This document shows, piece by piece, positions 5,492 through 63,500 of a stretch of DNA of 64,000 bases (position 1 is the first letter of the stretch; each line of letters opens with the position of its first letter). The DNA is taken from contig OZ320313.1 of NCBI GenBank assembly GCA_976226885.1, forward strand, positions 62,124,001-62,188,000. Direction: 5' to 3'. The DNA is from Iphione sp. A-MEVVRFRX5. Lineage: Eukaryota. The notes under the pieces are model-generated. The model ran no database searches. It was not told where the DNA came from and saw only the letters and a list, made by a program, of their open reading frames with translations. The position numbers and the translations under genes are program-made.

Positions 5492-6123
5492 GCCCCGGTT
5501 TCCATACATGCGGCGACCTGCGTTGGTATGCGTGTGCGTTTCAGTGCGGGAAACGCATTGTCGGGGTGTTACTGCATGGCGACGCACAGGGGTGTCCTTG
5601 TTCATGTGTGCGTTTGTGTGTGTGAACTAAGCAAAAAAATACAAAAAACAGCCAAAAAACGCCGAAAAACAGCAAATTACATGGAAACTGGGCCGAAAAA
5701 CGCTTATTTCATGCAAATTCAGCAAAAAAATGGCAAATTACATGGAAAATCGGCCGATAAATGGCTTATTTCATGCAAATTAGGCTGAAAAATGGCAAAA
5801 TTGTGCGGAAAAATTTGGGGAAAACACAACATTGTGCGGAAATGTGCAGTATCCACATCCAAAAAGTGAGTAAAAGTGAGTAAAAACAAGTAAAAGTGGG
5901 GAAATACAGGTGCGTTGGTGTGTGTTGGTGTGCGTTGCTGTGCATTTGCGGCAAATTTACGGGAAAGGATGGAAAATGGGCCCCGCAGGTCACCGCAGGT
6001 TACCGCACACGCAGGTCACCGCATGTATGGAAACCATCTCACTGTTTGCCTATAGATCAATAATGACATAATTCACCACAGGTCACCGCACACGCATACC
6101 ACCACACGTAAGGAAACCGGGCC
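5492..6123. mobile_element. PIF/Harbinger-like MITE, GGCCCGGTTTCC family
   Basis: TAA|GCCCCGGTTTCC...GGAAACCGGGCC|TAA; internal A-rich repeats related to the 58093 copy. Confidence 0.8.
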
Positions 6124-9100
6124 TAAAGGCCACTCTGGTCCATTCAAAACAGCAAGGTAGAAGCAAAACCTTCAGCTGACCAAAACTCACGTCCCACACC
6201 AACAAAACTGTTTATACTGTAACAGTATGAGATGCTATTAAAAGATTATTCACATATTGCGACTGGCTGAGGACAAGTCATCAGAGGCAGGAAGGCGGGG
6301 AGGGGGGGGCCGTGGGGTTGTAATGTCATATTGGTCTAATTGATCTAACATTGTCCGACTCTCACTTGTCTTTTTAATTGTTACAACTTTTGATTATCTA
6401 GTAAGTGATTTCCAGCTGGGAAAACGTACAAGTGTACAGCCAGGCGATATACATGAGTAAACGAGTAGAGTAGGTATGGACAAGTGCAAGTTGGATAATG
6501 TCTTAGGCTCCCAGTGATGGGTCAATTCAAAACATTTGCGATATTGACGTTTGTGTGCGTAAGGACTGATAATTGGGATAATGTATAATCTGTGAGGCTA
6601 TCCTCGCCTTAGCCTGGCAATGTTCGAGGCATTCTTTGTCCTTTCAGGTTAAACTGGGGACATGTTTCCACTAGAAATGTGTGATTCTTCTCTCCAAAAT
6701 AAAACACAAGGGGTGTATTCAGAGTACGTTCAAGGTTAGGATAGAGGCGGAAAATTCAGTTTAGTGTCACCTGTAAGAGTGCGTTTGGATTACTGGATTA
6801 CCTGTAAAAGATGCGGAGGGGGGGGCGATATATAGGTCGAATTGGAAATGTATCATGTGACAGGACGGTGTCCTATTTCTAGGGGATTACAAGCAAGATA
6901 GGGAGACACCCTGTTGCCATATTGTAATTAGAAGGGACGAATATTAAGTCCGGATTCGCATCCTAGATAACACATTGGGTTATCCATACAAACCAAATGC
7001 CGACATATTACGACTCGCAGTTCCTTTATGGAGAGCCATTCGCTAGAGTAAACTGGTGAGAGTATAAATCGCAACAAAGTAAGAATATTTGGCTGAATAC
7101 CAGTTAGTCTGCGGAGTTAATCGTCTTAATGCGGTAGTAATGTAAATGTAAGAGCATCATTATAACTTAATTAAATCTAATATCTAATATCAGAAAAAAT
7201 AACTAGCAATGTCTACAGTATTTTCCCAGTTGGCTAGTTGGAGTATTTCCTGCATACTAGACAAAGGACATCTCTGGTTCGAGTTGGGGAGAAGGTATCG
7301 GTTAGTACGAAACAGAAAAAGGTCATAAGAATAAGCCTCCAGTGATGGGGTCTGGCCTCAATCTGTGGTGTCTTACCTCCAGTGATGATCGCGCCATATC
7401 ATGGGATGATCTGCTTATGCAAACAGCCCTCACCTCTTGTGTATTGTAGCCTTATTTATCCGGGATTGGAGTTCTAATTCTTGCCCTTTCGAAGAAAACC
7501 ACCAAAGTCAGTGCCTGTGAATGAACACTGAGCGTAGACCTTCAAGGTCATATTTTTAGTGGATTTGATATTAAGTGCTGTATTGAAAGTTGTCTATAAT
7601 ACCAAAAGAAAAAAAAGAAAAATTAAAGCATTTAAATTACTCTAAAAGGAAATTTGATTTCAACAATCTTGAGTTGTACTCCTTCACAAAACATTCTTCT
7701 CTGGCCCAGTTTTATTTATCAGGAGGATGTCTCCTCTCATTGACTGCCTTGGTTAAAGATTCTTTTAGTTCATTTAAGCCATAAATTATAATAGAGTAAG
7801 TGAAACTCTTATAGATAGAAATACCAATAGGATTTGTGATTTCACACATCTAGAATTAAAATAGTCTTCTTTTGTTCCTCCCCAGATAGAATCATCCACT
7901 TTTTTATCATTCAGTTGATTTTCTTAAAGGTCAACACTGCACATTTTGGTCAGTTATAAAAATGTTTTTGATCTAAATTTTAATTGTACACATCTTTTAG
8001 ATCTCCTAATTATAACTTAACACACGTTCTACCCACAAGGTGATCATTATATATGCATATAGTCCACATTATCAGTCTGCAAAAAATATAGCTTATAATA
8101 TATAAACGTATATGTATGTATTGCACGTTTCCCTTAGAAATAGCAGCATAAAAGAAAGTCGTCGCCTGCTTTCGACTACAGTCGCAAATAGATTGAACTA
8201 CATCTGTATTGGTACTTCTCGTATTACCAGTGAATTGTAGAATACAGTATATTCTCACATCACCATGACCAGTTCTATATACTTGACACAACATATCTTA
8301 TACGCTGAGTAGCAATTGGCTAAGAACATGTTATACATCTATTTGTACATCTATTTGATTAGTTACAGTGTAGCATTAATATTCCATACTCTATTTTAAT
8401 TGGTTGAAAACATTCCGGTCCCATGAACAATCATTCCATATACAGATGGTTCTCCGAAACCGAACACTCAAAAAAGAAATACCTGTGACCAATACGGGAG
8501 TCTATACTTGGACCTGGGGTTGGGCAGTTGGCTTCATTGAACTAAAAGTTGGAAATACAGAATTACTGGGTATTATTTGCACTCTATTAGGGACTGTGTT
8601 TACTGACAAATTAAGTGGCTGTGTTTAAATTGACCTATGGCAACATATAGATCACTTAGTTAAACATAAGAAAACCATGCGCCTGTTCAGTGTATCATGG
8701 AACACATTTTGAATACGCTCAATACACAAGCCTGTCAAACCATCTTCCCTGACGTTTCTACCTTGTGTTTGGCATAAGAAAGACTTTTTGTCACGCAACG
8801 TACACATTATGACAAAGACGAACACGTACAGACACAAAGAGAGAACCTTTGCTCTTAAAGCAACTGCATTCAGCTGTTGTCTCTACTGTAGACAAATGAG
8901 TATTACTGGTCGATATATCATTTAGAAAAAGACTTGAATAAAAGAATACAAGTAAAAGGCCGGTATATACATGGAACCTTGGATATTCCGAGGATGCATA
9001 CTGTCAGCTAGTAACTGAATTTCCTGTATGAATTCTAATGTTTCTCTACCTAAGACTTAATGTGATTGATCTTGTGAAGCTATAACCACACTGGCGCCTT

Positions 9101-10457
9101 ATCATTCAATGCCGTGGCGCTCGAGAAGTGACATTACGTTCCAGAATGTCGGGCTTACTATGGTGGCATTGCGCTACATGTTAGAGATTATAGGTTCTTT
9201 GTCGCTGGGCTCCCTCAAGGTCATCTCGGGTTAGCTTTGTTGGTAAAAACCTGTCTTCTGTAGCTGGAACTCCCTTTTGGAGAAACACATTGTCGAATTC
9301 TGTAATGCCTTGTATTGTCAACCTTGCTGTAGTTGAAACCGCCCACATATCTTGACCTCGCTCCATTATATTCGATACATTCCTTGCCTTTGTGCAGCTC
9401 GTAAGAATTGACTTCTCTCTGTTGTTTTCAATCATAACTAGCTAAAACCTGCTTGCATTTTCGATCGAGGCCATACATTATGACGAAGAGCCCTTGCTGG
9501 GTAAGCTCCGATGCCTCGGTGCCAAGTCTTCTATCGCTTGGCGACTGCCCTAGTGTCACGCTTAAATGTAGTGCATTATAATAAACACCACCCAGCAGAT
9601 TATTGTGGTTGAAGTGATGCCAGGAACCTGAGCAGCGCACTACAGAGTTCACAAGTGTACATGTACAATGTACTATAGCACTGAGTACTCATGCTAGTCT
9701 TGACATATCACGCCGGTTCCATTCCTGTCATGAATACTTGTAAAACGCTCGTCCATACATGCCCTATCAAATATAATGTATTGATCGTCTGGTGTTGGTG
9801 CCAAAGTATAGCCTTATTCTCCCACACATGAACATCCGGCAAGTAAGCACTTGTTTTCCGCGCGTTTGAAAACATGGAAATTCAGATTGTCCAACTAAAA
9901 CATTTGATCAGAAGGGTTACATGCATGTGATTATTTCCGTATTACAGCAACAACGCCAAACAGATAATTTATTGTGTAGAGGTTTGTAGGGAGAATATTA
10001 CCTCCCGATTTGGAATTAGAAAATATGGTAATCCGTTCTTGGAATGAATGTGATGACAGCCCTTTACACGCTTGCCTTATACAGTTACTTCATCAGGCAT
10101 TTTTATACCCAACTAAGATTCCTCATTGCGATAAAACGTTTCGTCGTTGGGAAGCAAAGTATAATAATACATGCATATAATTATATAGTATAAATATTTA
10201 CATTTTCATTACTGATCGTCGAAAGGAAGAAATTCATGAAGTATCAATTTCGAAGGCATCACACTGACGCACACTCACACACACTCACGAATACGTACTT
10301 CTCTCCTCTCCTCAACATTTCGTTTTATACCTTGTACTTCTCCCTGCCTGATCTGAACCTCTCTCCCCAGAACTCCTCACTCCTCTCAACCATCGCATCT
10401 CTAGCCGTAACCTTTCCTTGTCTCCCCTCACCTTCTCTTGTCACCCTCACAAGAATG

Positions 10458-14100: not shown

Positions 14101-17100
14101 ATGAAAAATATTTGACCTATCTATAGTTTTGACCATCACAAGGAATTGCAATGAGAGTTAATTATATTTAACCGCCATAGCACAGTTATCATGCGTATTA
14201 CTAGTCTGAGCAAGGAGTGATCTAAGGGGAGGATCTAGCCCTCACCTCAAACATTTTGGATCTGCCACTGCTCTGTGTGGAGCTCGCATTTTAAACTACC
14301 TCTTTATTCCTCTATGTTCAAGTTCAATTTCATGTTCCAGTATCTGTTTATTGTGATAAACCTCATTACCAGAGGTCACCCATGACAGCACTTAGGTGCT
14401 ACCCCCATGTATGTCAGATATCTGGACGCAGACCTTTAAAGATATTAACATATTGTTAGGCGGAGAAGTTACTCTGCACAGAGTTTGGTTCCGGTTTTCA
14501 GAGTATGTTCTCAGCTCATGTTGGTCTGTCTCAGTTCATATCAGTCTCCAGAGTTTCTTGAGGTTATGTTCCTATTACCGAAGCTTTGTGAAGAACTTGG
14601 CAGCATTGTTAGCCCTGCTGAACACATTGTTGCAGAAAGAGGCAGAGTTCCACTGGAATGGAAAGTGCAAAGAGGCATTCAATAGCTTAAAGACATGGTT
14701 GATGATGGTGCCTATGTTGAGTTACCCCTGGCCAGAAGGGCAACTACACTTGGACACGGATGCAATAGCAGGCATAATTGCTGCCATATTGTCCCAAGAC
14801 TAGGACGGCAAGGAGGGAGTTCTTGCTTATGCCAGCCAGACTGTCACCAAAGTGGAACACAACTACTGCATGTCTAGGAAAGAGCTGTTGGCTGTCGTAT
14901 TTGGACTGAGGAAGTTCTGCCCATATCTGGGAGCTCAGCATGTTATTATCTGGACTAATCACAATTCCCTTAAGTGGCTCTGCCACTTTAAGGAACTGGA
15001 GACCCAGCTGGCATGGTGGCTTGAAGAGATATATGCCTACAACCTCACCATCAACCATCAACTAAACAGCGTTCACAGGATCTTGGATGCAGTGTATGCA
15101 ATGAGGCTGAAGGGAAGAGAGCCAAGCTGAAGCACAGAATAACTCTGTGTGGGTGTAACAAGGCAGAAAAAGACTCTTGCAGACAGTGCAGTGGGAAGAA
15201 AGGATGGTGGGTGCTTTGCTGGAGGCCCTGGAGTTAGAGGAAGGACTAGCCAATGTCCTTTCCCCTAGAGACTGTGAAGAGTGCTGGCTCTACAGTGAGA
15301 GAGAACAACTAGCCTTGAAAGAGGGAGTGTTGTGCCACATGGGAATGGGAAGACAGAAGCATTCTGATGCAGGCGTACATCCCCAAGACCCTGTAGCATG
15401 AAACATAGAAGCAGGTGCATGCAGGCCCTCTTGGAGGTCATTTGGGGACCAAGAGGATGCAGGGAGCAATCTATCTCAAATATTTTTGGCTGCAGCTGAG
15501 TAAGAATGTGGAGGTGTTGAGAAAGTGCTGCGTGATGTGCCAGAAGACTAAGGACCCCCCCCCCCAGCTAAACATCAGAGGCCACTCGTGTTGAATTCAG
15601 TGGCAGGACCTTAGGTGTTTGTAGCAGTGGATGTATGTGGACCATTTTCTAAGACACCAGGAGGCAATCGGTTCATTATTGTAGTAGCAGACCATTTCAC
15701 CAAGTGAGTTGAAGCCTTGGAAACCCTAGACATCATGGCCGAGACCAGAACTTTAAGGCTGCAGTCTTAAAGAACTTCTGCATTCCATTGGAGTGGACAA
15801 GTTGCGGACCACCCCATATCTCCCACAGATTGACAGGGTGGTTGAAAGGTTTAACCAGACACTGGGAAAGATGTTTGCAGCCTTAGTGAATTTAACTTGG
15901 ATGAACAATTCCCTTTCATGACAGCTGCATACCAGGTCACTTCTCATCCAGGAATTGGTTTTACCCCAATTGGCTGATACTGCAATGGGAGACTACCTTG
16001 CCATCAGAGTTGGCAGAGATTTTTGAAGTGCCCCCAGACCAGAGCCCTTTGCAGAGTGAATTTCTATCTGTGGTATCAGAGAAAAGGAAGTGGAGGCCCA
16101 CTGGTTGGCCTGGGAACGGTTGCAGTGCAACACAATTAGGCAGAAGGATTACTACAACAAGCACGTGTGCGAGCAGACCTATCAACCAGGAGCACAGGTG
16201 TGGTTACTTTCCTTATTAAAGAAGAATGGGTGTTCCCCCGAGTTGGAAAAGGTTTGGCAAGGCCCATGTACCATACACAACCAACTAGATGTATCAGAAG
16301 TAATCTCCCAGATCAAGAATGGGACCAGACGGCATGTGGTACACACAGATTTCCTGAAGCCAGCAGTAGACCCCCTGCATGATAACGTCATAGAGGTGCC
16401 ATGTGTCCTACGTGGGATGAGTGGGGACAAGGCAAAAGGAGCTGAGCAGAAGAGAGCGACAACATGCTGTGTGTCAAGGGAGGGGCGACAACCAGTCCAA
16501 CAGGAGAGCAGGAGGGGCAGAGGGACCCTGGCTCTACCCCTGACAACCTCTGATTCCGGGTAGTAATGTTAAGCCCAGATCTCAAGAAGGACCTCTACCA
16601 GCACCTCGCTAGTACAGACACTGGGGCGAGACAATGGCCAGCCTGGTATGGCCCCTGCCCAGACAGTGGAAGCCCCATAACCCAATGGAAGGGGCATGGG
16701 CAAAGCTTCTAGCCCCATTATTGAAGAAAGCATTCCTTGCAGGAGTTTTAGCTAGATAGGAAGGAGGAAGAGGAGGAGACTACTGGTTTGGGCATTTCAT
16801 GTAGAAGGTCCAGGATGTCCACTGGAAAATGAAGAAGTGACTAGGAGAGATGACCATGGCTGATGTCTTTGCTGAACTCAGACAGCTAAATCAGGAGCTG
16901 TTTCAGTGACTGCGGAGCAGAAGTTGGCATTCCCTGCCTGTTGTGCAGAGACTCAATGTGGAGTATTAGGTTTTCTATCTTCTTTATCCACTATCATTTC
17001 AATAAGGTGTATCTGTTATAATGACATGATAAGATATTGTGAAATGTATATTAACTGTTCCAAAGTAGGCATAAAAATGTTAATCGATACAGTGTAAGGA

Positions 17101-26100: not shown

Positions 26101-28256
26101 TGAAAGACATCCGCTAACCATATGTAGGTAATTAACAAAAAGAGTGACCGGGTGCGGTTTTTTTGTAAGGATGCATGTGAAACGTGCCTTAACCAAGGCC
26201 AAAAAGTATTTTCTAGTGTAAATATATGTATACTTTGTTGGAACTAATATATTGAAGCGTTCGGCCCAGTTTCCATATGTGCATTAGTGCCCATGTGCAT
26301 TGCCATGTGTTCCCATGTGTTTTTATAGGATAGGATGATTTCATTGTGAGTGTCTTCTGTATGCATGTGTCCGTGTGCCCTGGATATCCATTGTTTATTA
26401 TTGAACACTGCTGGTTAATTTCACACACACACACATACACCAACACACAGTAGTATACAGCAGATTGTCTTTGCAGCAGGACGAACACTGTCTACAAAAT
26501 GTCAGTTCATATTAAATTATTTATCTAGTTTGCATATGGTTTGCATTAAACCACACAATTTCCACAGAAATGTCTCAGCAATATGCTTTGATTTCCGTAA
26601 AAAACTGCACAATTGATTTCCGTAAAAAACGGCACAATTTCCACAGGTATCCTTTGATTTCCATTAAAAAAAACACAATGTCCACAGATATGCTCCTCTT
26701 TCTACACACACATGCTTACTTGCACACACTTTCTCTCTCTTTGTCTGTTTCATTCATACAAACGCACACAATTGCACGGTTAATGGTAAACCCCTGTGCA
26801 TTAGGCTGCATAAAAAGAGAAACGCATTGAGACACACCCATCCCTCTCATACAGCCTCATGCAGCCAAACACACATATGGAAACCGGGCCTTAAGACAGC
26901 AACACAAAGATGTGTTGACCATTCAGCATACAAAAAGCATGGTTGCATTTTTTGTTTCCTCACTGTATTTATGGGATTAGAAACACCCCACAAGAAAGGT
27001 GCACAGTGATTAACAGCAGTATCGTGAGGCTGGTATCTCAATCAAAATGTTAGTACCCCAGATCAATTTCACATATCATTGTTATCCCACCCAAAGTGAA
27101 AGCGAACTAAAGTTGATCTCCATGGATTAAAGTAGCATTCTTTCATAATAGAAAGTTTTTGTTATACAGAAAACCTAAAATCTAATTAATTTCCATTGGT
27201 TTAGTCAGGAATGTTACAATGATATGCACTCGTTTTATTTTTATCCATATCTCTTAAAAATAAAAAAAATCCCCATTTGTTACCCTGACGAATAATACAC
27301 GGATACACACAATGCAATCATGGATTTTCTGCTCACCGTTGGTTTAATGTATGAATACCGTGTTGCTTACAAAATCGGTCATGAAATTTCCGCTTTCCTT
27401 TCAGTTATGTTTCATGTTTTATTTTTAGGTAACCAATACTACCGGAGTACCCCGAGCGTTTTCCCTCCGAACAGCTACAGAGTTGATAATGGTTATCCTC
27501 GTTCACTAAGCGTCTGGGGTACAGGCTTTACAAAAATCGATGCCGTTTTCACCTGGTATTATAACAGGAGGGTTTACTTCTTCTCTGGACATCAGTACAT
27601 CAGATACAATGATGTGCTGCTCCGGGTAAATATCGGCAATATGCCAGCAGACAAGTCATACAAGTTTACATAGCTGATGCTGGACCCATGCTATATATAG
27701 GTGCATGTAAATATAAATGTATAAGGACATATCTACTAAATATTACTGGGCTGGAGTATGTAGATTCATAAAAATGTTTGGTTAAATCAATCTATAAATC
27801 AAATCAAAGCGATTTCATTGAATACATTTCGTCATAGCTAATAGCGCTCCAACTTATATATCATCACACCTTTGTGCTCATTCAATTCAGGTGGATACCC
27901 CGACCACGTTTCCGTACCCACGGGATTTAGAGCAGTGGTGGTTATCATGCCCAACAAGTCGACAACTGCTCGCCGATATTAGGTCCGAGCATCTCGCCGA
28001 CAATTCCACGAACAGTTCCAGTCAGACGCTTAATGTCGAACAAGATCAAGAGGCAAATGGCCCCGAGCGGCTAAGGATCTTCCATGAGTCATCAGATCAA
28101 ATACCGGACCTCCCCGGATCAATGAACTCTCGCTTCGTAGAGTTTGAGTTGGGCGTTCAAGATAGCGATTCTGCCTCTACAGCGACTCTTTCGCGTGACA
28201 TTCAGTGGATTTGTATAAGCACATCCTCTCTTCTTTTCTTTCAGTTTTTCTCATAG
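10996..28256 (+). CDS. MMP: Matrix metalloproteinase (M10A family), spliced, 5'-incomplete; probably GPI-anchored. Exons 10996-11113, 11483-11596, 12799-12893, 20264-20465, 20998-21156, 21596-21778, 22007-22152, 25322-25466, 27429-27625, 27891-28256 (574 aa without the signal-peptide exon)
   Basis: All ten exons are bounded by AG/GT and join in one open frame (1725 nt). Motifs: prodomain LVKYGF...FQNYYGLAETG, cysteine switch PRCGFPD, furin site RRKKR, structural-zinc segment [24 protein letters not shown], catalytic [11 protein letters not shown], Met-turn ALMY, Pro/Thr hinge, four hemopexin repeats between C(NNRLTFDA) and WWLSC, hydrophobic C-terminus. The exact orthologue cannot be assigned. 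Confidence 0.95.
11483..11596 (+). CDS. MMP: MMP exon: cysteine switch and furin site
   Basis: ctgcag|GC...TTA G|gtagt; VPDQETVKLMSTPRCGFPDILDNSTLSGRRKKRFLPLG. Confidence 0.95.
12799..12893 (+). CDS. MMP: MMP exon: start of catalytic domain
   Basis: ttcaag|GT...GAG|gtattt; RWTRTDLTYSVGSSTKMPLHQVEAIIAKALE. Confidence 0.92.
13224..13663. mobile_element. Possible non-autonomous piggyBac-type element
   Basis: TTAA|CCC...GGG|TTAA, but the TIR match is weak (about 8/14). Confidence 0.45.
14454..14545 (+). repeat. 5' LTR remnant, deleted and fused directly to pol
   Basis: Shares tgttaggc.gagaag, cacagagtttggttc and cagagtatgttctcag.tcat with the 3' LTR; the right end is approximate. Confidence 0.75.
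14540..16450 (+). pseudogene. Gypsy pol relic (RT C-terminus, RNase H, integrase) with stops and frameshifts
   Basis: SFLRLCSYYRSFVKN, FHWNGKCKEAFNSLK, LDTDA, LAYASQT...NYCMSRKELLAVVFGLRKF, GHLGTK...CVMCQ (integrase HHCC remnant), GPF...RFIIVVADHFTK, TPYLPQIDRVVERFNQTL; boundaries approximate. Confidence 0.9.
17809..17978 (+). pseudogene. Relic of two tandem C2H2 zinc fingers in an extra ORF in the Gypsy 3' internal region
   Basis: FYCSDYRVKFKREVTL-(frameshift)-DHFCVH and CPVARYQGKMFKHCDDFRRHLQRIDK. C2H2 spacing is restored by single-base reversions (TAC>TGC, TAT>TGT, GAC>CAC) plus one indel. Confidence 0.65.
18954..19145 (+). repeat. 3' LTR (192 bp)
   Basis: TGTT...AACA termini, preceded by the PPT, TATAAG near 19032, AATAAA at 19079-84. 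Confidence 0.88.
19691..20096. mobile_element. Harbinger-like MITE, AGYRCTATCCCCAT family
   Basis: TTA|AGCGCTATCCCCATAGA...TCTATGGGGATAGCTCT|TTA; internal GC-rich repeats shared with the 41657 copy. Confidence 0.82.
20264..20465 (+). CDS. MMP: MMP exon: catalytic domain, structural Zn/Ca ligands
   Basis: ctatag|ATA...TTA G|gtacc; IWSNSSRLSF...[45 protein letters not shown]; missed by the ORF track. Confidence 0.95.
20998..21156 (+). CDS. MMP: MMP exon: catalytic zinc motif and Met-turn
   Basis: ttgcag|GA...TAC G|gtgtgt; [31 protein letters not shown]...DDINGIQYIYG. Confidence 0.97.
21596..21778 (+). CDS. MMP: MMP exon: proline-rich hinge and start of hemopexin domain
   Basis: aacag|GG...GCA G|gttcaa; APPAPPRPLPQPT...PPFCNNRLTFDAIFSINRRAFAIAG. 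Confidence 0.93.
22007..22152 (+). CDS. MMP: MMP exon: hemopexin repeats 1-2
   Basis: ctgcag|GA...GAG|gtgagc; SSVFELSPQGVLNGYPKSLTDVFG...VDAAL...VLYLFE. Confidence 0.93.
23625..24150 (+). repeat. Dispersed repeat, copy 1 (homologous to about 56405-57260)
   Basis: Shared ggggggacc..aggaatgctgctg, cttataactct.aaaccct and tgccaatcaaggtgg.tgt..agagagag in the same order. Confidence 0.75.
24439..25185. mobile_element. Harbinger-like MITE (GGCACTRTCCCCATGTAC TIR)
   Basis: TAA TSD on both sides; 27-bp TIR with 3 mismatches. Confidence 0.8.
25322..25466 (+). CDS. MMP: MMP exon: hemopexin repeats 2-3
   Basis: tgtag|GAT...AAA G|gtaac; DNSVWKF...FQGLPGNIDAAFYFARFGAIYFFKG; missed by the ORF track. Confidence 0.93.
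25912..26188. mobile_element. MITE, GGCGGTGTWCACATG family, degenerate
   Basis: GGCGGTGTTCACATGTAT...ATGCATGTGAAACGTGCC, TTAA on both sides; related to the 56643 copy. Confidence 0.6.
26263..26890. mobile_element. Harbinger-like MITE, GGCCCGGTTTCC family
   Basis: GGCCCAGTTTCCATATGTG...CACATATGGAAACCGGGCC|TTA. Confidence 0.78.
27429..27625 (+). CDS. MMP: MMP exon: hemopexin repeats 3-4
   Basis: ttttag|GT...CGG|gtaaat; NQYYR...GYPRSLSVWGTGFTKIDAVFTWYYNRRVYFFSGHQYIRYND. Confidence 0.94.
27891..28256 (+). CDS. MMP: MMP terminal exon: end of hemopexin, ~100-aa stalk, hydrophobic GPI-signal-like tail
   Basis: ttcag|GTG...TAG; VDTPTTFPYPRDLEQWWLSC...DSDSASTATLSRDIQWICISTSSLLFFQFFS*. Confidence 0.92.
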   Translation: MDTPTTFPYPRDLEQWWLSCPTSRQLLADIRSEHLADNSTNSSSQTLNVEQDQEANGPERLRIFHESSDQIPDLPGSMNSRFVEFELGVQDSDSASTATLSRDIQWICISTSSLLFFQFFS

Positions 28257-41656: not shown

Positions 41657-42316
41657 AGTACTATCCCCATAGACGCGAACCTTCCGCACCCGCCACTCTG
41701 TGCGTGAAGAGCGGGGAGACCGCTTGAAGCAGTTAAGATATAATTATACCCATGTACGCGGACAACCCGGACACGGCACCTGCTGCGTGCGGGATGATCG
41801 GGTGTGGTCCGGGAATCACGCATACCCCGCCACCTTGCGCGTGATGGGAATAGGTGTGTGTGTGTGTGTGTGTGTGCGTGTGTGTGTGTGCATGTGTGTG
41901 TGTGCATGTGTGTGTGTGTGCATATCTCCCTGGATTCCTGTCAAATTTGTGTAAGTAATGTGTTTTTTGTGCAAATCTCACTGAATTCCTGTCAAATTTG
42001 TGTAGAAAATGTGTTTTTTATGCAGATCTCACTGAATTCCTGTCAAATTTGTGTAAATAATGTGTTTTTTTTGTGCAGATCTCACTGAATTCCTGTCAAA
42101 TTTGTGTAAATGATGTGTTTTTTGTGCATATCACATTGAATTCCTATCTTTTGTACTATATTTTGTTGTATTTCTTTTGTATTCTCAGCCTACCTGAGGT
42201 GGCGAATAGTTCGCGCATATGGGGATAAACCCCGCCACCTGTTGCGTACAGGTCCGGGCTGCACGCACCACGCCACAATTTGCGTGCGGGCAATTCGCGT
42301 CTATGGGGATAGTGCT
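41657..42316. mobile_element. Harbinger-like MITE just upstream of the LRR-Ig gene
   Basis: TTA|AGTACTATCCCCATAGACGCGAA...TTCGCGTCTATGGGGATAGTGCT|TTA (23-bp TIR, 1 mismatch); internal (TG)n and about four 51-52-bp tandem units. Confidence 0.88.
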
Positions 42317-42632
42317 TTACACAATAGACTACAGACAAATCTGGAGGCGCAAACCAGACCTGTCCCCCCAGACGTTCGCCGTACCTCACTCGAATAACCT
42401 TCGCTACACGGGTCTTTTCCGCCTGCCCGCCCACAGTGCATCGCCTGCCAGAGGAACTAGGTCACAGAGACGCGCCGAAAACAAGCGACGAGGGAAGGGC
42501 CAGTCGTGGAAAGGTGAGGAGGGTGCATGGACAAACAGTGAGCGTGTGCACCGTTTTGGAAGAGAAGAGAAACCAAGTCGGCCAGACTGGGGACGAGTTG
42601 AGGTGAGGGTTATCCAAGGCCGGACTCGGGAA

Positions 42633-43785
42633 ATGGCGGTGTGGCAGGCCTGTAGCCGGTTAGTAGTCGTTGGTGTTGTGGCGGTGTGCTTCACCGTGGC
42701 GGCGGTCGAAGCTTTCGATGGGTGTAGGATACGGTATGGCCCGCGCGGCTGCCACGACAATGTCTATGAAGGTGTGCTTGTTACCTGTGATGGCGACGGC
42801 AACTACGGAGCCATACCGCCGGTCATACCTAGCGATACAGTCTACATCTCGCTCAACAACTTTCAGTTCGACACACTCGCGCGCGCCAACTTCTCCAAGT
42901 TCAAGATGGTGCAGTGCATGAGCATCATGAACTCCGGCATTAATGAGATCGACTTCGATACCTTCACCGACATGGAGTCACTGCTCGAATTAGAGCTGCA
43001 TAACACTGACTTGGACGGCTACGATCTGAACTTTATCAACCACCCTGAATTCAAACCCGTCCGGGTCGCGATTACAGGATCCCCGCGCATCACTGCCTTG
43101 AATTTCCATGGTACACCCCTGATGGAGAAGATCACTGGATTCAGCCTTAAGGGCAATAGTATAACATTTATTCAGCCAAGCCTGATCTCAGCCCTCCAGA
43201 ATCTAGTCACTCTCGATCTCAGTGATAACAGGCTGGACACACTCGAATGGGACAAGCTGAGTGAGATGAGCAAGCTCAATGGACTCTACCTAAGCGGGAA
43301 CAACTTCCAGAACATCCCGCAGCGTGTTTTCCGCACCTTCTTTGCTGTGAGGGAGCTTAAGATTGCCGGCAATCCTTTCCACTGTAATTGCAACCTGCGC
43401 TGGCTGCGGGACTTCTACGCTGACACTAGTGACCGTATCATCGACCTTGACCAAGTGCACTGTGTTTCACCCTTCAAAAAGCGCATGATTGACGTACCTG
43501 AAAGCCAGTTTCTATGCACTCAACCCTCGCTACCCGTCATCGAGCGCTACCCCCTCGACTCGGAGGGTAAGGAGTATGCATACAATTGTTCGTCGATGGC
43601 GGATCCAGCGCCCAGTCTCACCCTGCACTTCACGGGCGACCAGACGCTCATCACGCCACCTAGCGAAGACCTGTCCAAGCTTAAAACAGCAACACCACGG
43701 ATTATAGGGTCAGCAGGAGGTGTCAAATGCATTGCCACCAACTCCGAGGGCTTCAGGGAGAAAGTAGAGTTTGTACCTCTCACAG
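42633..43785 (+). CDS. Leucine-rich repeat and Ig-like domain cell-surface protein (LIG-type), first coding exon; downstream exon(s) unresolved
   Basis: Signal peptide MAVWQACSRLVVVGVVAVCFTVAAVEA, Cys N-cap, LRRs (LVTLDLSDNRL, LNGLYLSGNNF), LRRCT NPFHCNCNLRWL...C...C, Ig-like C...ADPAP...CIATNSEG; strong donor ACAG|gtaggt at 43785/6. Confidence 0.9.
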
Positions 43786-44247
43786 GTAGGTTAACCCAGA
43801 CAGTGTCTTACTTCCTTGTGGACTTACGTCCAGTTTTCATGTGTACAGGGTTTTTTTTCTGGAAGCCATGATTGTCCAGAAAATGGGCAAATTTTCTGGA
43901 TGACCACAGACATCCAGTTTGCATCTCTACAGGCAGGAGAGAGGGTGTGTGTGTGTTGATCGGAAGGAATTCTTACCAACTCTGTGTAAATGGTTAGTTT
44001 TTTTTGTGCTGATTTGAAGAAATCCACCTCAGATCTGTGGAAATGGCAAGTGTTTTAACCCTTTCCTGACCGACAATGTTAAATCGTTCACTGGTGAACG
44101 ATGACCTTCAAGTTCAATTTACGTGTAGAGAGATTGTGATTTTGGATAAAACTGTTACATAATAAGGAAGATAAACTTGCAATAAAGGCATATAGACCCT
44201 AGAAATTTGCAAATATCTATATTTATACATTTAAATTGACTTTCGGC

Positions 44248-44271
44248 TGACGTCACTATGATGTTACGTCA
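44248..44271 (+). promoter_or_regulatory. CRE/ATF-type bZIP sites immediately upstream of the transposase ATG
   Basis: TGACGTCA at 44248-55 and TTACGTCA at 44264-71; ATG at 44280. Confidence 0.4.
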
Positions 44272-44279
44272 CTGACAAT

Positions 44280-47261
44280 ATGTCGCGGCCTAAGAGGATC
44301 GCAGCAGAGCGAGCGAAGGAGCTATTTCAAGCTAATCTTCAAGAAGAGGAAAGTGATGATTGTGAATTTTACGATGTTTCATCATCAGAAGATGAAGATG
44401 ATGAATCAATGGTTGTTGATGAAGAGTATTATGATTTAGAAGAGGAGGAAGAAGAAAATGCAGGTCTTATGGATGTGAGCGTAGCAGACGATCAACAAAG
44501 CCCGACGTGAGTTTGTGTTTATCAAGAAATAATTTCAAATCTTACAAATATTTACATGGAATCAATACATATGATACTATGAGTTTGGATTGTTATTGAA
44601 ACATGATAATAAAGTTTTATTCGCACTGTTTGAATAAAACAGAAACAGAAATGTAAAGCGCTCGGATTATGATTGACGTTAGGTTATGACGTAAACAGTT
44701 ACGTCATTGTTGTAAACAAAAGCACGTGTGCGCTGTAGTTGAAGTTATTGTCATTACGTGGCAATGGTACGATTATTACAGAAATAATGGCATAAGGTTG
44801 CCCTTTTGCTAATAATTCAACATGTCTATTAAAATTTAAAAAGAAAACACTAACGAATACAGGATATGTATAAATATTACGGTTTGTATATCCTTACATT
44901 CATAGATCGTCACCCGTAGGGTCGTATGACACTCCAGATATACAAGTTGAGTCTTCTGAATTCCAACCTGATGCTTCCCCTGGACCTCAATTGCCTCTCG
45001 GAGACAATAGATATGGACAACATCTCTTCAATCGGGCAATTGATTTCTTCCATCTCTTCTTTTCCGTGGAGGTGATTAAAGTAAGTTTTTACCTTGTGTT
45101 ACTGTCTATCATGTTCAATGCAATATAGACCTCATTTTGATAAGGATGTGCTTGTGTGATACTACTCCTTTGGGATATCTCTATGGAATGGTTCATGGCA
45201 TGAGATTTATTTCTAACAGGTGAAGATCACGATATATTATTTTTTGTAATATTTTTATTTTTATCTTTACAGATGATTACGGATTCAACCAATGCTTATG
45301 GTAATCTCCACATTCTCCAAAAGCAGACGTATGGCGTACATGCTGATGGCTGTTGGAAAGACGTCCAAATTGAGGAGATGCAGAATTTCTTAGCACTGAT
45401 AATTTTCATGGGCTTCATCCACAGAGCAGACATAAGCCGTTATTGGTCCCAGGCCACACTGTATGCAGGAGGATGGGCAAGGCGATTTATGTCTAGGAAC
45501 CGGTGAGTGTTGGATATGTCATATGACTAGGCAAATTATAGGATAATTATGATGTTTCAGCTGTAATACTGTGGCCTTATATTTCTTTCCATCCATGTTT
45601 GATGAATCGGGGCCCCCCCCTCTATCAATTAATCTATTTTATCATGGATAACTCTTTTTTTCAGCTTCAAAGCAGTTCTAGGCATGTTGCACGTTACAAA
45701 CCCTGAAAACGAGGATGTCAATGACAAACTGACCAAGGTTCGACCCCTGATAACGATAATAAAGAAGGCATGCCAGTCTACCTACGTTCCTTTCCAAAAC
45801 CTCTCTGTGGACGAACGTATGGTGCGTTCCAAAGCTAGATCCGGAATTCGGCAATACATCCCCAAGAAACCTGTTCGCTTTGGCATAAAATTGTGGTGCC
45901 TATGTGATGCAAAGACAGGATTCACCTCGGATTTCAAGTAAGAAAATAGACAATGCTGTGTCACGTATATGTATGAATCTATGGATCAATGCAATAAAAT
46001 GTACTGGCTATTTCCATTGACATTGCACAATATTAATACCTTTCTTCCAAAATGTTGATTTATTACAGTGTGTACACTGGACGAAGGGAAAAACCTAGTG
46101 GACGAGGCATTGGATTCGATGTTGTCACATCCTTGGTCGACCGTTTCAGAGATAAGGGTTACACTGTGTATTTCGACAATTACTTCACTTCATTGCCTCT
46201 CCTTCAACACCTGAAAGCAGCTGGAATATTTGCTTGTGGAACGACCATTCCTACCCGTCGTGGATTTCCCAAGGTGAGATAACTGATGAATGTACTGATA
46301 ACAGGTTGTCATAGTGAAGTATATTATTTTTACATTATGTGGATGAATTGTGCCTACATATATGTCGTGTTCTTTCAATGCAGAAACTGAGAGACAAGGC
46401 CTGGCTGCGTAAACCTAAACGTGGACAGATGAGGTATACAAGAGTAAATGGTACTTTATGCCTGCAATGGTATGACAACAGATCGGTTTGCATTTGTTCT
46501 ACCAAACACAATGCAAACGACTTTGTGATGGTTGACAGAAGAACCAAGAACAAGGCTGGAAAATTTGAATGTATCCAAGTGAAGAAACCAGTATCTGTCC
46601 ACGAATACAATAAGTATATGGGCGGAGTCGATATTTCTGACCAGAGGCTCGAGAGGTACTGCATACTGCTCAAATCCATGAGGTGGTGGAAGACAATATT
46701 TTATCACCTCCTGGACATGTCCGTCCTTAACGCTTACATCTTGTTCGACCTCTGGAGAAAGGCTCATCCTGAAAATCCGCTACTGCACAGACCAGCTGGT
46801 AAGACATTACTTTAGTACTCTGATATACCCAATAATTGAAAGAAAGAAGGCACTGTAATGTTTCCTTTCAGGTAACTACATGGCTTTGTATGACATTCCA
46901 CAAACATTTTTGTCGGCACTGTTCTGATTGACTCATTCTTTTTTTCCTGGTAACAGGGTATTCACATCTGTCATTCAGAGAAGAGTTGGTGAGGCAGCTG
47001 GCTTGCATTGCTGATACTGAAGACATCCCTAGTCAAGGTGTCCTGGTCAGGCAGCCCAATCATAACACACGACATGCTTCACATATGCCTGAAGTCTCAG
47101 AGAAAAGAAAGAATTGTCGTGTATGCTACACACTTCACAAGAAACAAAACAAGACCTCTTGGATGTGTCCAGAACCGGGTTGTCAAGTCAGCTTGTGCCT
47201 AAACGTAAACAGAAATTGCTTCAAGCTTTGGCACTCCAGTGCATTTGATGAGTACGTGTGA
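44280..47261 (+). CDS. piggyBac transposase, 609 aa, 7 exons: 44280-44506, 44906-45080, 45273-45502, 45665-45937, 46069-46273, 46384-46798, 46957-47261
   Basis: All junctions are GT-AG and phase-compatible (2,0,2,2,0,1), 1830 nt with no internal stop. Acidic N-terminus, DFFHLFF..E.I..ITDSTNAY, catalytic triad in SVDE, YFDNYFTS and MGGVDISDQ, QYIPKKPVRFGIK, C-terminal Cys-rich domain CRVC...CPEPGC...LC...CF..WH. Confidence 0.95.
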
Positions 47262-47462
47262 ATGTAAGTATTGACATACTATATACAGATGGACACAAAA
47301 TCTAAATCATACAGGAATGTTTCATGATTTATTCATGAAATTCTACAAATACTCAAAGAATACTGTAGTCCACAAACTAGATAATCTCTCAGTACTTCTA
47401 GGAATAGTACCCATTCTGCCATATTACAGTTTATTGTCACTGCAGCTGCTACACTACTTTTT

Positions 47463-48588
47463 TTAGGGATACGGCATTATTGTTAGCTCTTTCAGGGAAA
47501 CATGGTACACTCCTGGAGCATGTTGGTATTGCTCGTCGTAGGCGCCCTGGTTGTCACTTGGAAATTGCTCTCTCACAGCTGCGCGGAGCTCACTGGGGAA
47601 CACGAATGTGTGACAATCTTCTCCAAGTCCAGCTCCAAACTGCAAGAAAATTGACACTATTTTGTTGTAATTGTAAAAAAAGAGCATGTCTAAATCTTAT
47701 ATGGTGCATTTCCAATAATAGCAATTCCATACTCTGGATGTAGAGAATTACCTTGGTTGTGTTATATTGCCCCAGTATTAGCATAACAGTTTCCATCCAG
47801 TAGGACAACAGATGTAAGATAATGTAAAACAATGAAGGGCAAACAATAGCATGTATTCCATTATGGTTTTGTATAAGGAATGGAGGATTGTAAGAAAACT
47901 GGAAAACAGCACCAAAGAGTGATTGTCTATATGACAATATACTCACTTTGGCAGAGGCCCGCAGCTTCTTATATACATACTTTCGGCTGGGGCTCTCCTT
48001 TATGAGTTGCAGAAGAGGAACAGGCACATGAAGACTGGGTAAGGAAAATTGGACATGTAAATATGTTTATGTGACGATGTTACAAGAAATTTACAGTAAG
48101 CAAGGGCATTCAGTCAAGAGCAACTTCTTTTCAGTATATCATACAGCGACATGGTAAACATCAATGCACAAAGCAATCTGTGCTATAAGGATAGAAGCAT
48201 TACAATGGCAAGCATTCCAGAAGACAAAACCTGACCTATCCAAGTTTCCTTTTTACACATGAATTTAAAAAAAAAAACAACACAAAACCTGCACATTTTA
48301 CATCGTATTACCAAAGTGTCTTACTTCAACGTACTTGTCCAGATGGTCTAGCTATATTGTACATATTTCTAATACATATGTGATTTAAATGCTACAGCGT
48401 GAGTGCTACCCTCTTGGTATCATGCACCAAAGTACGTGAACGTTTTGTACGGTAAGCACATGGTGTTCGACATATGTCTGTTTTATAAGCATTAGAAATA
48501 ATAACATCTGCAATCATTTCCATTAATAAAGACTCTGGTATTATTACACTTACCCTGCCTTGTAGAAAGCCTTTATTAATTCATCCAT
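47463..48588 (-). CDS. Second (passenger) gene inside piggyBac, convergent with the transposase; exons 48588-48554, 48034-47947, 47639-47463; 99 aa, KolX / P2X7-ballast-like motif (tentative)
   Basis: Donors CAGG|gtaagt and CAAA|gtgagt; acceptors ttttccttacccag| and aattttcttgcag|. The 300-nt frame is open: MDELIKAFYKAGLHVPVPLLQLIKESPSRKYVYKKLRASAKFGAGLGEDCHTFVFPSELRAAVREQFPSDNQGAYDEQYQHAPGVYHVSLKELTIMPYP*. Minus-strand AATAAA at 47430-35 and 47328-33. Confidence 0.68.
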
Positions 48589-49337
48589 CTTCTATTCTGC
48601 CGCAAGAATGAGAAAACCAGGTTCGACTTGCACTGCGCACCCAACGGTTTTGAACGACTGACACGTCACGTCACGGCATAAACATGTATTTCAGTGAAAT
48701 CCACCATTTTTTTTAAATTTTCACATTTATTTCAAGCCATCAAATCATAACTTATATGTGATACTGCCGTTATATAAAAAAAAATCGATTTAATTACATT
48801 TTTCTCAACTCAAACATAATAACCGTTATGCACTCCTGCCCTCTGGCTTTTCATATACGCACCAACATTCGCCTTTCATTTTTTAACACCAGAGTGCTCA
48901 CATTCGAGATGTTGCAGTCCAGCTCATAATCATCAGGTATCTTTAAACGAACTATCAATTGATAGCAAATGTCTCAGGGAACATTCCATCAATAATGACT
49001 GAAATTGTCAGATGTGAACTAAATAGGCTTTTGGCTCATTCTATCAATTTTTGCTGTTTTTTGCGTCTTTTCCAGACAACTCTCTTCTTTGTTCATCTCC
49101 ACCTCCCTTATATTTAACCCTTTCATGCATTCTAATTTGAGTATGATAACCATGAAGTAAACAATCTAATTTCATTTAAACCATTTCTTATTAAAATCGG
49201 ATCATTTTTAACGAAATTATTAAATAAAATGTAACCTTATGTCCCGGTTCCCAAATGACAACAGCCGAAAACGCGGTCAGGAAAGGGTTAATGCACATGA
49301 TATGCAAACAAAATATTTTACATTACCTAACATGTTA

Positions 49338-49560
49338 GGCTGTGTTCATCCTGCTGCAAAGACAGTCTTCTCTACACTACTGTCCGTGGGCATCCGTGGT
49401 CAGGAAAAAATTAACACTGTCCTGTTTATCTCCATATGCACATGCAAAATGGAGCATGTACACATAGAAACAATCATGTATATTAGCATAGGATCATTTT
49501 TGTCCTGTACACACCTACATGGAGTACAGAAAGAAAACCCATACACATGGAAACTAGGCC
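49338..49560. mobile_element. Degenerate Harbinger-like MITE
   Basis: TTA|GGCTGTGTTCAT...ATGGAAACTAGGCC|TTA. Confidence 0.5.
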
Positions 49561-54392: not shown

Positions 54393-54666
54393 NNNNNNNN
54401 NNNNNNNNNNNNNNNNNNNNNNNNNNNNNNNNNNNNNNNNNNNNNNNNNNNNNNNNNNNNNNNNNNNNNNNNNNNNNNNNNNNNNNNNNNNNNNNNNNNN
54501 NNNNNNNNNNNNNNNNNNNNNNNNNNNNNNNNNNNNNNNNNNNNNNNNNNNNNNNNNNNNNNNNNNNNNNNNNNNNNNNNNNNNNNNNNNNNNNNNNNNN
54601 NNNNNNNNNNNNNNNNNNNNNNNNNNNNNNNNNNNNNNNNNNNNNNNNNNNNNNNNNNNNNNNNNN
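54393..54666. other. Assembly gap (274 N)
   Basis: Run of n. Confidence 1.
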
Positions 54667-60539: not shown

Positions 60540-63500
60540 TGTCCACCTTTACGTATCTATTGTTGAACGCACGGTGTACCTCTAGATAGGCAAGGTGTTG
60601 TCGGTGTCCTTTTTTCGGCGTCTATATCTTGCCAGTATCAGTCTATTCGACTTTTGCTACTAGTCTGACCCTCACTATGTACATGTTTTGTATGTCCTTT
60701 CTGCGATGGAATATTAATCATTCGTTTCAATGTTAAACAGAGTCGTTTGTATGAGTCAACGATCGGTACTGTTGCCAGTATTTTTTTATCTTTTCTATCA
60801 TCAAATTCTGTTCCCTCCCCCTTCTTCATAAAATTAATCAGAGGAACATGGCGGGTGTAGGAATATTTAATTCACCGGCTTTTGTTGGGCTAATCTCTCG
60901 TATAACACCATTAGTGCTAAATATCGATGGTGTTTAAAGTACCATGTACATGGGACAGACCAGTGTCATTTTTTTTCATTTTCCTTACATCTTTAACGAG
61001 GAACTATAATATCCAGCTATCAATTTAGCTGTTCTTCATTATCATCCTGGCGTAGCATATACATGTAATCTATTATTGAGAATTGAGAGACCAGAATACC
61101 CGGGGTTGTTCATGTATTTGCATTCAGTTCGTTCTTCGGCTACGCAAGCAGAACGGCGCTGAACACGGATCCTGACACTCGTATGTTGTGTCCCACGCAC
61201 GTTACCCAATATGATTCAGACCTCGCAAGGTAATTACTACAGGTGACCAATCCCTGATAGGACGACAATAATCAAGCAACGACAGCGACAAGTAAATGGC
61301 AGGCATATTATGTTACATGGTCGATTGCGGAGTGTGATTTATGACCAAACAGGTAATAGTTGATGGGTATTTCTTGGAGGAGGGGTAATGATTTGCGAGC
61401 GGCCCTTGACACTGTTTTGCAGCATTTTTTTGGTATGCTTGACCTGCCATAAATTGGTTCCTTTCATGTGTATTTATGTTTAAACAAATATACAGTGTAT
61501 ATTGTTCGTTGCAAGGAGGAGGTCTACAACTGATGAAATGCAAGGAACGGCGACATGTTTTGATTTGTAGAGATGGACGCTATGTATATTAACCTTCGTG
61601 TTTTTTTTACACGCAGTTGCCTAAATATTATGTTGGCAACAGGTGTATTCTATGGATGCTTTTTGTCTAGTGTGGGATGATACCGTCACTCTACCTTTTT
61701 CATGTCTCCTCCGTTCGCTCTATTTGTCAGACTGGTCAAATTCACCGTCTGCGAAAATGCTCGCCGTATCTCCTGCTATAAAATACACTTGCGCTTCATT
61801 TGCCCTTTGCCATTTCCAAGTCTGGATATACTTAAGCACTACTTTTTAACCATTAAACGACTTGCTATGCACATCAGTATACACAGATTGAAATGAAACA
61901 GTGGGCTTAGGCCTTACAGTCCCCCTATTTCATATGTGCCTGTCAGGGAGAGGGCAGGGAAGCATAAAAAGATGGACGAACATTGTCTAACATTTGTTAG
62001 TTCAGGTTAAAATTTTATCTTATTTGCACATAATTTGCATTAAAAACAGCTTATACAGATTTAACAGGAATCCAATGAGATCCGTACAAAAACCATGCAA
62101 TTAACACAGATTTGACAGGAATAAAAGGTTAAACTCATTTCTGTAGCCTACTTATCCATGTTGGTCTGAAGTTCGGAAAAAATGAGCATTGTATGTTTCC
62201 CTTCCACGAGCCCCTCCAGACCCCGGACCCCAGACTTGTATGCAAGAAACAACCTGGTTGGAAGCCGTAGGATGCTATTTTTCATAAACACACATAATGC
62301 AGAGTCTAGGATAAAAATTCGGACGTATGTAAACTGGGCCTTAGTTTTGTTCGTTTTAAATACAATGTACCACCCATGTGATATCTACCAAAGGCCCAGT
62401 CGTTTGGTGAAATTAGAATCGTTTTCAGGGCTCATATTATATTTCGTCATATTCATAAATAAGGCAGCATTAAAGATTGGCTGTTGACAAAGAAAAGCAT
62501 TTAAAATAGAAAGCAACAGTCTTTTTAACCAGCAGGTTTTCGTCGCAGCTCGCGAGAAGGCATTCGTTTCTAGGTATACTGTGATAATTGCTCGGTTGTA
62601 ATACATGTACTGAGAATATAGCTGCGTACATCCGTATCCAGGCATATAATCCTTTATGCTTATACTAGATGTGCGCGTACGTATACATGTATGCGTAAGA
62701 TATATATTTCCTATTGGCCATGTCACCCCGTTATTCATTACGTGCTTCGCTGCAGCCAGGACAAATTCGGCTTAAAACTCAGTTCTCGAACGAAACAGGC
62801 GAGACAAGTCACTGGTCATGTCGGGTTCTGTCAGACGCGCGAATAACCTTGGGCTGTCTGTGACTGATGCGAAGGATAAAAGGAAGCGCTAGGTCTGACA
62901 TTGGATGCAGATTATTTGCAGTGCTTTTAAATACATTTTTTTAATTCGTACGATTTTGAAAATAGTGTCTAAATAGGCTAAACAAAAATGTTGATGTGCA
63001 CTTCTCAAGTATGCACCTGAGTATAGACGAATCAACCTATATGATGTAAATGTAGTTCAGAACCACATATTCCTTTTTATGTATAAAAAAGGGGCACCGA
63101 GTAAGAATTTTGAGCACCCGCATCTCCTGTTTAATGTGATAGAAATCTTTAGTCGGCGAATCAGAGAAGTATGTCAGCACTGTCAGTGATTGTCGACAGT
63201 CAGAATGACATTGTTCGAGTTGTTTACCTACTAACCCCATGTATCTGGATGGCGGTTCTGTCCAGTGATCTACGCCAGGTCGTGACACTAACTACTTGTA
63301 TAACAATTGCTGTGCCGCATCACATGTTGGCCCTCGTAACCCAAGCCCAGTTCTTATAAAAAGACAGTTGCCTCTAAGTATTTGAAAGGGAAAAAGTCTT
63401 TTTTAAAGGCCTCGTGAGATTTCCTCCCTTACGTAGGTACCCACAAATTAAAAAAAAAATAATTAAGTTTTTCTCCTCTACGATCACACAAATGCACGCA

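Follow-up and report, generated by a model that had tools for sequence, protein, structure and literature searches.

The window examined here is a 64,000-nucleotide stretch of Iphione sp. A-MEVVRFRX5 (assembly GCA_976226885.1, contig OZ320313.1, positions 62,124,001 to 62,188,000 of the forward strand), and positions 44055-49291 of it hold a piggyBac transposon with an intron-bearing transposase gene and, on the opposite strand, a small second gene. We consider it likely that this unit is a single full-length, autonomous-type, two-gene, intron-bearing piggyBac, and that its introns were gained in an ancestor shared with a sister element from another assembly (L001). The ends and the repeat copies that bear on the insertion are as follows.

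44055..44058, no strand: left TTAA target-site duplication; paralogous empty sites have a single TTAA
44059..44072, plus: left 14-bp terminal inverted repeat (TIR), CCCTTTCCTGACCG; resembles the L001 ends CCCTAT(GG/CC)TGACG
49274..49287, minus: right 14-bp TIR, by sequence match to the left TIR
49288..49291, no strand: right TTAA target-site duplication, by sequence match
26440..26600, minus: paralogous empty site, where the flanking repeat occurs with a single TTAA and no element; 76% over the 124 nt that cross the junction
61960..62070, minus: second, weaker paralogous empty site, by alignment of the joined flanks

Direct reading and a script agree that TTAACCCTTTCCTGACCG has exactly two matches in the window, at 44055-44072 (+) and, as the exact reverse complement, at 49274-49291 (−). 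They are the sole matches even with up to three mismatches allowed, and shuffled sequences averaged 0.02 matches and never reached two. The structure of the ends is thus TTAA, perfect inverted ends (14/14 bp) and TTAA again, with identity breaking off at base 15, and the pair is the longest inverted repeat of the region (I1 in the inverted-repeat listing). The TIRs begin with 5′-CCC and end with GGG-3′, as piggyBac-type termini do, and the duplicated TTAA is the piggyBac type of target site. The two TTAAs enclose 5,229 bp.

For an empty-site comparison, a junction was built from 100 nt of left flank, running through the TTAA, and 100 nt of right flank, and was aligned to the window. The joined flanks match 26447-26568 (−) across the junction, with a weaker match at 61974-62045, and both copies of this short dispersed repeat run from left flank through one TTAA into right flank without any element. 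Therefore, 5,229 bp were inserted into a TTAA that was duplicated in the process, and the element is a true insertion relative to these paralogous empty sites.

The transposase gene occupies the left part of the element in seven exons.

44280..44506, plus: exon 1, acidic N-terminus, ATG at 44280; its N-terminus MSRPKRIAAERAKELFQ matches MARPRRAAASRALELFQ of exon 1 in L001
44906..45080, plus: exon 2, from the exon model and tblastn against L001
45273..45502, plus: exon 3, DDE_Tnp_1_7 positions 18-80 (Pfam)
45665..45937, plus: exon 4, first catalytic D in VDERM, DDE_Tnp_1_7 positions 82-170 (Pfam, alignment to 6x67)
46069..46273, plus: exon 5, second catalytic D in YFDNYF, DDE_Tnp_1_7 positions 190-244 (Pfam, alignment to 9c0f)
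46384..46798, plus: exon 6, third catalytic D and the D450 equivalent in GGVDISDQ, DDE_Tnp_1_7 positions 251-349 (Pfam, structure alignment)
46957..47261, plus: exon 7, Cys-rich zf-Tnp_2 tail, stop at 47259-47261 (Pfam)

Joined by script, these exons give 1830 nt, that is, 609 codons and a stop, and nothing interrupts the frame before it. The introns (399, 192, 162, 131, 110 and 158 bp) are all of the GT-AG kind; each of the six opens with GT(A/G)AG and closes with a pyrimidine-rich tract and AG, and their G+C content is 0.30-0.36 against 0.42-0.46 in the exons. Four of the six fall inside the catalytic domain. Retention of any one of them brings a stop after 1-15 codons, so the 609-amino-acid enzyme would be producible only from fully spliced mRNA. 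In intron 1, ARAGORN detected no tRNA; the only Rfam matches were two to miRNAs, below threshold and outside the element.

Pfam was scanned with each exon separately. Exons 3-6 cover positions 18-349 of the DDE_Tnp_1_7 core (PF13843) in order, with E-values from 1e-9 to 8e-23 that all pass the curated cut-off, and the profile coordinates run on from exon to exon; splicing would therefore restore one continuous domain. In alignments to known structures, D268 of the Trichoplusia ni (T. ni) piggyBac transposase (PDB 6x67) falls on the D of VDERM in exon 4, its D447 and D450 fall on the D residues of GGVDISDQ (exon 6), and YFDNYF of exon 5 aligns with YMDNYY of piggyBat (PDB 9c0f). Exon 7 scores 28.5 bits against a cut-off of 24 for the Cys-rich C-terminal domain zf-Tnp_2 (PF13842). 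The equivalent of D346 is presumably the D of YFDNYF, placed through the piggyBat alignment and the DNW/DNY motif, and with it the catalytic DDD triad (D268, D346 and D447 in T. ni piggyBac) is complete. Much of this anatomy had been proposed in a preliminary description made from the letters of the window: the perfect 14-bp TIRs with TTAA on both sides hold (two exact matches against 0.02 expected), the seven exons, the 609 stop-free residues and the six intron lengths were reproduced by our script, the DDD triad and the Cys-rich domain are borne out by the alignments and the Pfam match, several introns were rightly placed within the catalytic core, and the unspliced track of open reading frames (ORFs) does break the element into fragments.

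Evidence on the age of the introns comes from L001, an element in the 690-kb ENA contig ERZ25767047:ctg38044, which was found through P0001, an ORF fragment that is the best match to exon 6. The L001 element (locus coordinates 2220-9990, 7.8 kb) has longer introns than the one in the window and clearly related ends, TTAA-CCCTATGGTGACG at 2220 and CGTCAGGATAGGG-TTAA at 9990; its TIRs match those of the window at 11 of 13 positions. Its first exon is homologous to ours and is followed by an intron, and from exon 2 onward its transposase frame is open and retains the DDD residues and the Cys-rich tail. When the spliced protein is searched against L001 with tblastn, the alignment breaks at residues 134, 211, 301, 371 and 508, as it does in the window. 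Splice-site search and direct reading place introns 2 (phase 0), 3 (phase 2), 4 (phase 2), 5 (phase 0) and 6 (phase 1) at the identical codon and phase in both elements; at intron 4, for example, both read ...DF-GA before gtaagt and resume after cag with T-GTG-TAC. One extra intron is present in the L001 transposase, at about residue 336. DNA likeness between the two elements is confined to the left terminus, which is the sole non-coding stretch alike, and the exons; the introns show no sequence relationship.

A maximum-likelihood tree of 35 proteins pairs the window and L001 transposases as sisters (SH-aLRT 99, 51% amino-acid identity) and nests them in a clade whose checked members are intronless. 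Because the pair sits within that clade, the introns appear to have been gained on the branch leading to the window element and L001. The best full-length relatives, P0002 and P0004, align to the spliced protein in one colinear stretch each (44% identity over residues 94-602 and 43% over residues 76-597, respectively); their genes are uninterrupted in DNA, and L009 is continuous as well.

The continuity of these close relatives is also what could be said for regarding the putative introns as later insertions into, or decay of, a once continuous ORF, with GT-AG borders by coincidence. Such an account would have to produce canonical sites in six out of six cases with the frame kept, Pfam coordinates that stay contiguous across exons, and five introns whose positions and phases recur in L001 despite unrelated intron sequences; moreover, the introns have no counterpart among the other repeats of the window. 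The shared positions contradict it, and we find it scarcely credible. Judging from the comparison of the two elements, the introns are old, inherited features of a mobile lineage and not signs of decay.

It is also worth considering a domesticated PGBD-like host gene that happens to lie between inverted repeats. Most multi-intron piggyBac genes in the literature are domesticated, e.g., PGBD5, PGM and TPB2 (PMC5381638, PMC3902484), and the window element shares with PGBD5 and its like (PMC3902484, PMC5381638) a multi-intron, piggyBac-derived coding sequence. Domesticated genes, however, stand at fixed orthologous loci without TIRs or target-site duplication, whereas here TTAA and CCC...GGG ends are present and the paralogous empty sites match exactly at those ends; a domesticated gene lying there by chance is therefore excluded by the empty sites. 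The sister element, in another assembly, also carries TIRs and TTAA, and the catalytic triad is complete, unlike that of PGBD5, whose catalytic motif is degenerate as tabulated in PMC5381638. On the strength of the TIRs, the target-site duplication and the empty sites we rejected this reading, which retains next to no weight. The preliminary description had taken the element for a mobile transposon and for part of an intron-rich piggyBac lineage; the first point agrees with its TIRs, target-site duplication and paralogous empty sites, and the second with the intron positions and phases, similar TIRs and TTAA of L001.

What the preliminary description had overlooked is a convergent spliced second gene inside the element. 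It is predicted on the minus strand, in the stretch from the transposase stop (47261) to the right end, and comprises three exons encoding 99 amino acids, separated by introns of 519 and 307 bp with GT-AG borders.

48554..48588, minus: second gene exon 1, ATG at 48588-48586 (gene model)
47947..48034, minus: second gene exon 2 (gene model)
47463..47639, minus: second gene exon 3, with a motif like the KolX tail, stop at 47463-47465; conserved in L001

L001 keeps this gene in the equivalent convergent position (tblastn, 40% over 45 amino acids, E 6.5e-9), and the tblastn matches suggest that it is further split there. By eye only, the tail RK.VYKK...G.GLG......P.E.R..VR..FP....GAY recalls the KolX-like proteins of piggyBacs in PMC9587614. 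Two exon pieces were scanned against Pfam with E-values of up to 1 allowed, and neither matched any family, the P2X7 C-terminal family included. The 99-residue protein has one Cys against the seven Zn-binding Cys of the KolX/P2X7 cytoplasmic ballast family; its membership in that family is therefore not established. Only 201 nt (47262-47462) separate the stops of the two convergent genes. For the second gene (−), AATAAA signals lie at about 47430, some 30 nt downstream of its stop, and at about 47328. The transposase gene has a GTAAGT 4 nt past its stop and no canonical AATAAA on the plus strand within about 440 nt of it; since both of these hold, its 3′ end may overlap the second gene in antisense or carry an intron in the 3′ untranslated region.

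Compared with known systems, the element is of an ordinary transposon kind with an unusual gene layout. It shares with canonical piggyBacs (T. ni piggyBac/IFP2, 6x67; piggyBat, 9c0f) the TTAA duplication, the short CCC...GGG ends, a subterminal palindrome, the DDE_Tnp_1_7 core with residues equivalent to D268, D346 and D447, and the Cys-rich C-terminal domain. The difference lies in the genes, six introns and a second gene here, but one gene with a single uninterrupted ORF there. The T. ni piggyBac gene is such an uninterrupted ORF in a one-gene element. Introns are common in other superfamilies of DNA transposons (P, Ac, En/Spm and MuDR). Repbase probably contains multi-exon piggyBac entries.

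A 2023 survey of animal genomes found piggyBacs that contain single ORFs (PMC10813416), and reviews describe mobile piggyBac-like elements as TIR-flanked single ORFs, with the multi-intron PGBD5, PGM and TPB2 among the domesticated (PMC5381638). The nearest precedent for the layout described here is Pokey, the piggyBac of Daphnia that is mobile and specific to ribosomal DNA, which has TIRs, TTAA and one spliceosomal intron in its transposase gene, with splicing confirmed by reverse-transcription PCR (PMC3849761). That intron measures 68-84 bp, whereas the window element has six of 110-399 bp, four of them in the catalytic domain, and no specificity for ribosomal DNA is evident. For the second gene, Kojima et al. 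2022 reported KolX-like proteins in ‘a few piggyBac families’, e.g., piggyBac-2_GrCh and piggyBac-14_PI (PMC9587614, Data S6); these are from other organisms, and the likeness of our second protein to them, the motif RK..YK...G.LG......P.......R...P....GAY, was seen by eye and is not statistically confirmed. TLEWI, Tc1-like elements of bivalves, similarly place GT-AG introns (2-5) in a DDE transposase gene of invertebrate genomes, but they are of low copy number, lack TIRs and have been discussed as domestication candidates (bioRxiv 10.1101/656579), whereas the window element keeps its ends and target-site duplication. The novelty implied by the preliminary description was overstated: Pokey, with its RT-PCR-confirmed intron, is a published case of a mobile one-intron piggyBac, and KolX-like genes in piggyBacs are in print as well. 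What this analysis adds is evidence that two TIR-bearing piggyBacs at 51% identity have six introns in common by position and phase, with codon and phase identical for introns 2-6, and with intron 1 after a homologous exon.

Several observations weigh against the reading we prefer. The intron-rich clade has just two members in searches of proteins, of the homologue index and of metagenomes; intron 1 is positioned by a weakly conserved acidic region; five exon ORFs were absent from the protein collection in an exact look-up; no second copy of the element was seen within the 64-kb window; and the missing plus-strand AATAAA described above leaves the transposase without a nearby polyadenylation signal. 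The last two, together with a CpG observed/expected ratio of 0.65 in the element, slightly above the 0.57 of the remaining window, are also what one might expect of a copy that is structurally intact but immobile, either silenced by the host or with a transposase inactive for reasons invisible in the sequence. If so, the words ‘potentially active’ of the preliminary description would go too far. This copy nevertheless has both frames open (609 and 99 amino acids), TIRs that are perfect at 14/14 positions, a perfect target-site duplication and every catalytic residue. We regard immobility as unlikely, though as a possibility to be taken seriously. The perfect ends and the two open reading frames suggest a fairly recent insertion.

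In the reading that we favor, a two-gene piggyBac that has kept its inherited introns, the element would have arrived by cut-and-paste insertion at a TTAA within a short dispersed repeat; a 550-amino-acid leucine-rich-repeat ORF ends 184 bp upstream of the insertion. It would have carried the introns ever since they were gained in the common ancestor with L001. Transcription would begin in the 5′ region of about 200 bp, and the host spliceosome would take out the six introns in vivo to yield the 609-residue DDD enzyme with its Cys-rich, presumably DNA-binding, tail. Binding at the 14-bp ends and at the subterminal palindrome, this enzyme would excise the element and reinsert it at TTAA like any piggyBac, while the predicted 99-residue, three-exon gene with its KolX-tail-like motif would face the transposase gene tail-to-tail.

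The requirement for complete splicing invites an analogy with the Drosophila P element, a DNA transposon whose transposase also requires intron removal, so that splicing could set where it is active; the comparison goes no further than analogy, since P belongs to another superfamily. Tissue-specific intron retention has been demonstrated for P (Laski et al. 1986, as cited in bioRxiv 10.1101/656579). By that analogy, tissue-dependent retention might yield truncated, possibly repressing proteins and restrict jumping to the germ line. Such a gate would fit the stop that follows within 1-15 codons of any retained intron, the fixed places of the introns across about 50% protein divergence, and a cluster of motifs resembling the cAMP response element (CRE) inside intron 1. 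Fixed positions, however, are expected anyway in a DNA-copied element once introns have been gained. Because all donors are of the strong consensus GT(A/G)AG and are accompanied by good pyrimidine tracts, the sequence argues for constitutive rather than regulated splicing, and a gate of the P-element kind seems to us quite improbable. A broader conjecture, which we rate as rather improbable too, is that the introns and the small accessory gene have persisted through a long divergence because the introns are of use to the element, whether as a splicing gate that confines transposase to certain cells or as a mark that gets its transcripts past host surveillance of intronless mobile DNA. The second option takes up the idea of silencing by HUSH, which in vertebrates acts on intronless mobile elements (PMC8770142).

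Short motifs near the ends and ahead of the genes are candidates for regulatory or binding functions.

44084..44101, no strand: left subterminal palindrome TCGTTCAC-TGG-GTGAACGA, perfect 8-bp arms, 12 nt inward of the left TIR
44248..44271, plus: CRE-like TGACGTCA / TTACGTCA cluster, putative promoter element, 9 nt upstream of the transposase ATG
48663..48673, minus: TGACGTGACGT motif cluster, putative promoter element, about 75 nt upstream of the ATG of the second gene
49114..49127, plus: internal left-end-like copy TTAACCCTTTCATG, 150 nt inward of the right end (I25)

A palindrome occurs at an equal distance from the end of L001 (TCGATCA-CATA-TGATCGA, about 2250-2270), where the changed base is mirrored in the other arm. 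The left subterminal palindrome is a probable transposase binding site and looks like a conserved dimer site for the tail of the enzyme. As for the CRE-like motifs, 8 of the 24 occurrences of TGACGT/ACGTCA in the window fall in the element against about 2 expected (four-fold, binomial 5e-4), and clusters of TGACGT(CA) stand just upstream of both start codons and in intron 1 (44674-44706). In L001, a comparable cluster (9314-9376) precedes the second gene, and none stands ahead of the transposase. We infer that the clusters ahead of both genes are putative promoter elements. From TTAACCCTTTCATG to the right end (49114-49291) runs a 178-bp TTAA-to-TTAA unit whose inverted termini match at 9 of 10 positions; it may act as a subterminal binding site or mark the beginnings of a miniature derivative. 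A further stretch, CGTGGTCAGGAAAAAATTAA at 49395-49414, resembles the right end at 16 of 20 positions, TTAA included, and lies 104 nt outside the element; it may mean nothing, as other 20-mers of the region match equally well by chance.

Searched with HMMER against 1.84 billion representatives, exon 6 returned 9,050 relatives. Closest among the full-length intronless ones is P0002 (559 amino acids), at L002:4770-8828 of GCA_037042905.1, in a unit of about 4.1 kb bounded by TTAA and 12-bp inverted repeats (CTCTTATCCAAC), which is therefore also an element with ends. A word-indexed homologue search with exon 6 found nothing, the same search with the exon 6 ORF of L001 found only itself and one distant match, and a metagenome scan with exon 6 gave only two distant intronless relatives with 36-39% identity in the best matching segment. 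A related piggyBac at L004:80-199 (GCA_024449465.1) carries a GT-AG intron of 118 bp, which lies 11 nt downstream from where intron 4 falls in the window and is in phase 1 instead of 2. Given the offset and the different phase, we rejected it as a third carrier of intron 4; the comparison suggests a separate gain or a slide.

Elements of this kind suggest that a cut-and-paste piggyBac can long carry a host-like multi-intron gene and yet stay a transposon. In the literature searched, an intron-rich piggyBac gene is taken almost as a sign of domestication. Surveys that seek one long ORF would score such elements as broken, and intact piggyBacs would then be undercounted in invertebrate genomes. 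The cDNA of the spliced gene is a candidate for a new piggyBac transposase, and a small predicted accessory protein goes with it. The understanding of how piggyBac works is unchanged by this element.

Upstream of the element, an uninterrupted ORF of 550 amino acids with leucine-rich repeats (42219-43871, +; LRR_8, E 2.5e-18; G+C 0.53, CpG observed/expected 0.86) ends 184 nt before it. Copies of a 51-bp repeat flank this ORF on both sides, with a tandem array of it at 41917-42145. On the other side of the element, positions 54393-54666 are a run of 274 N, an assembly gap or masked sequence. Farther away, in a GC-rich block at 14-20 kb, an ORF fragment (14396-14803) with a match to RT_RNaseH_2 (E 2e-8) is probably a retroelement remnant.

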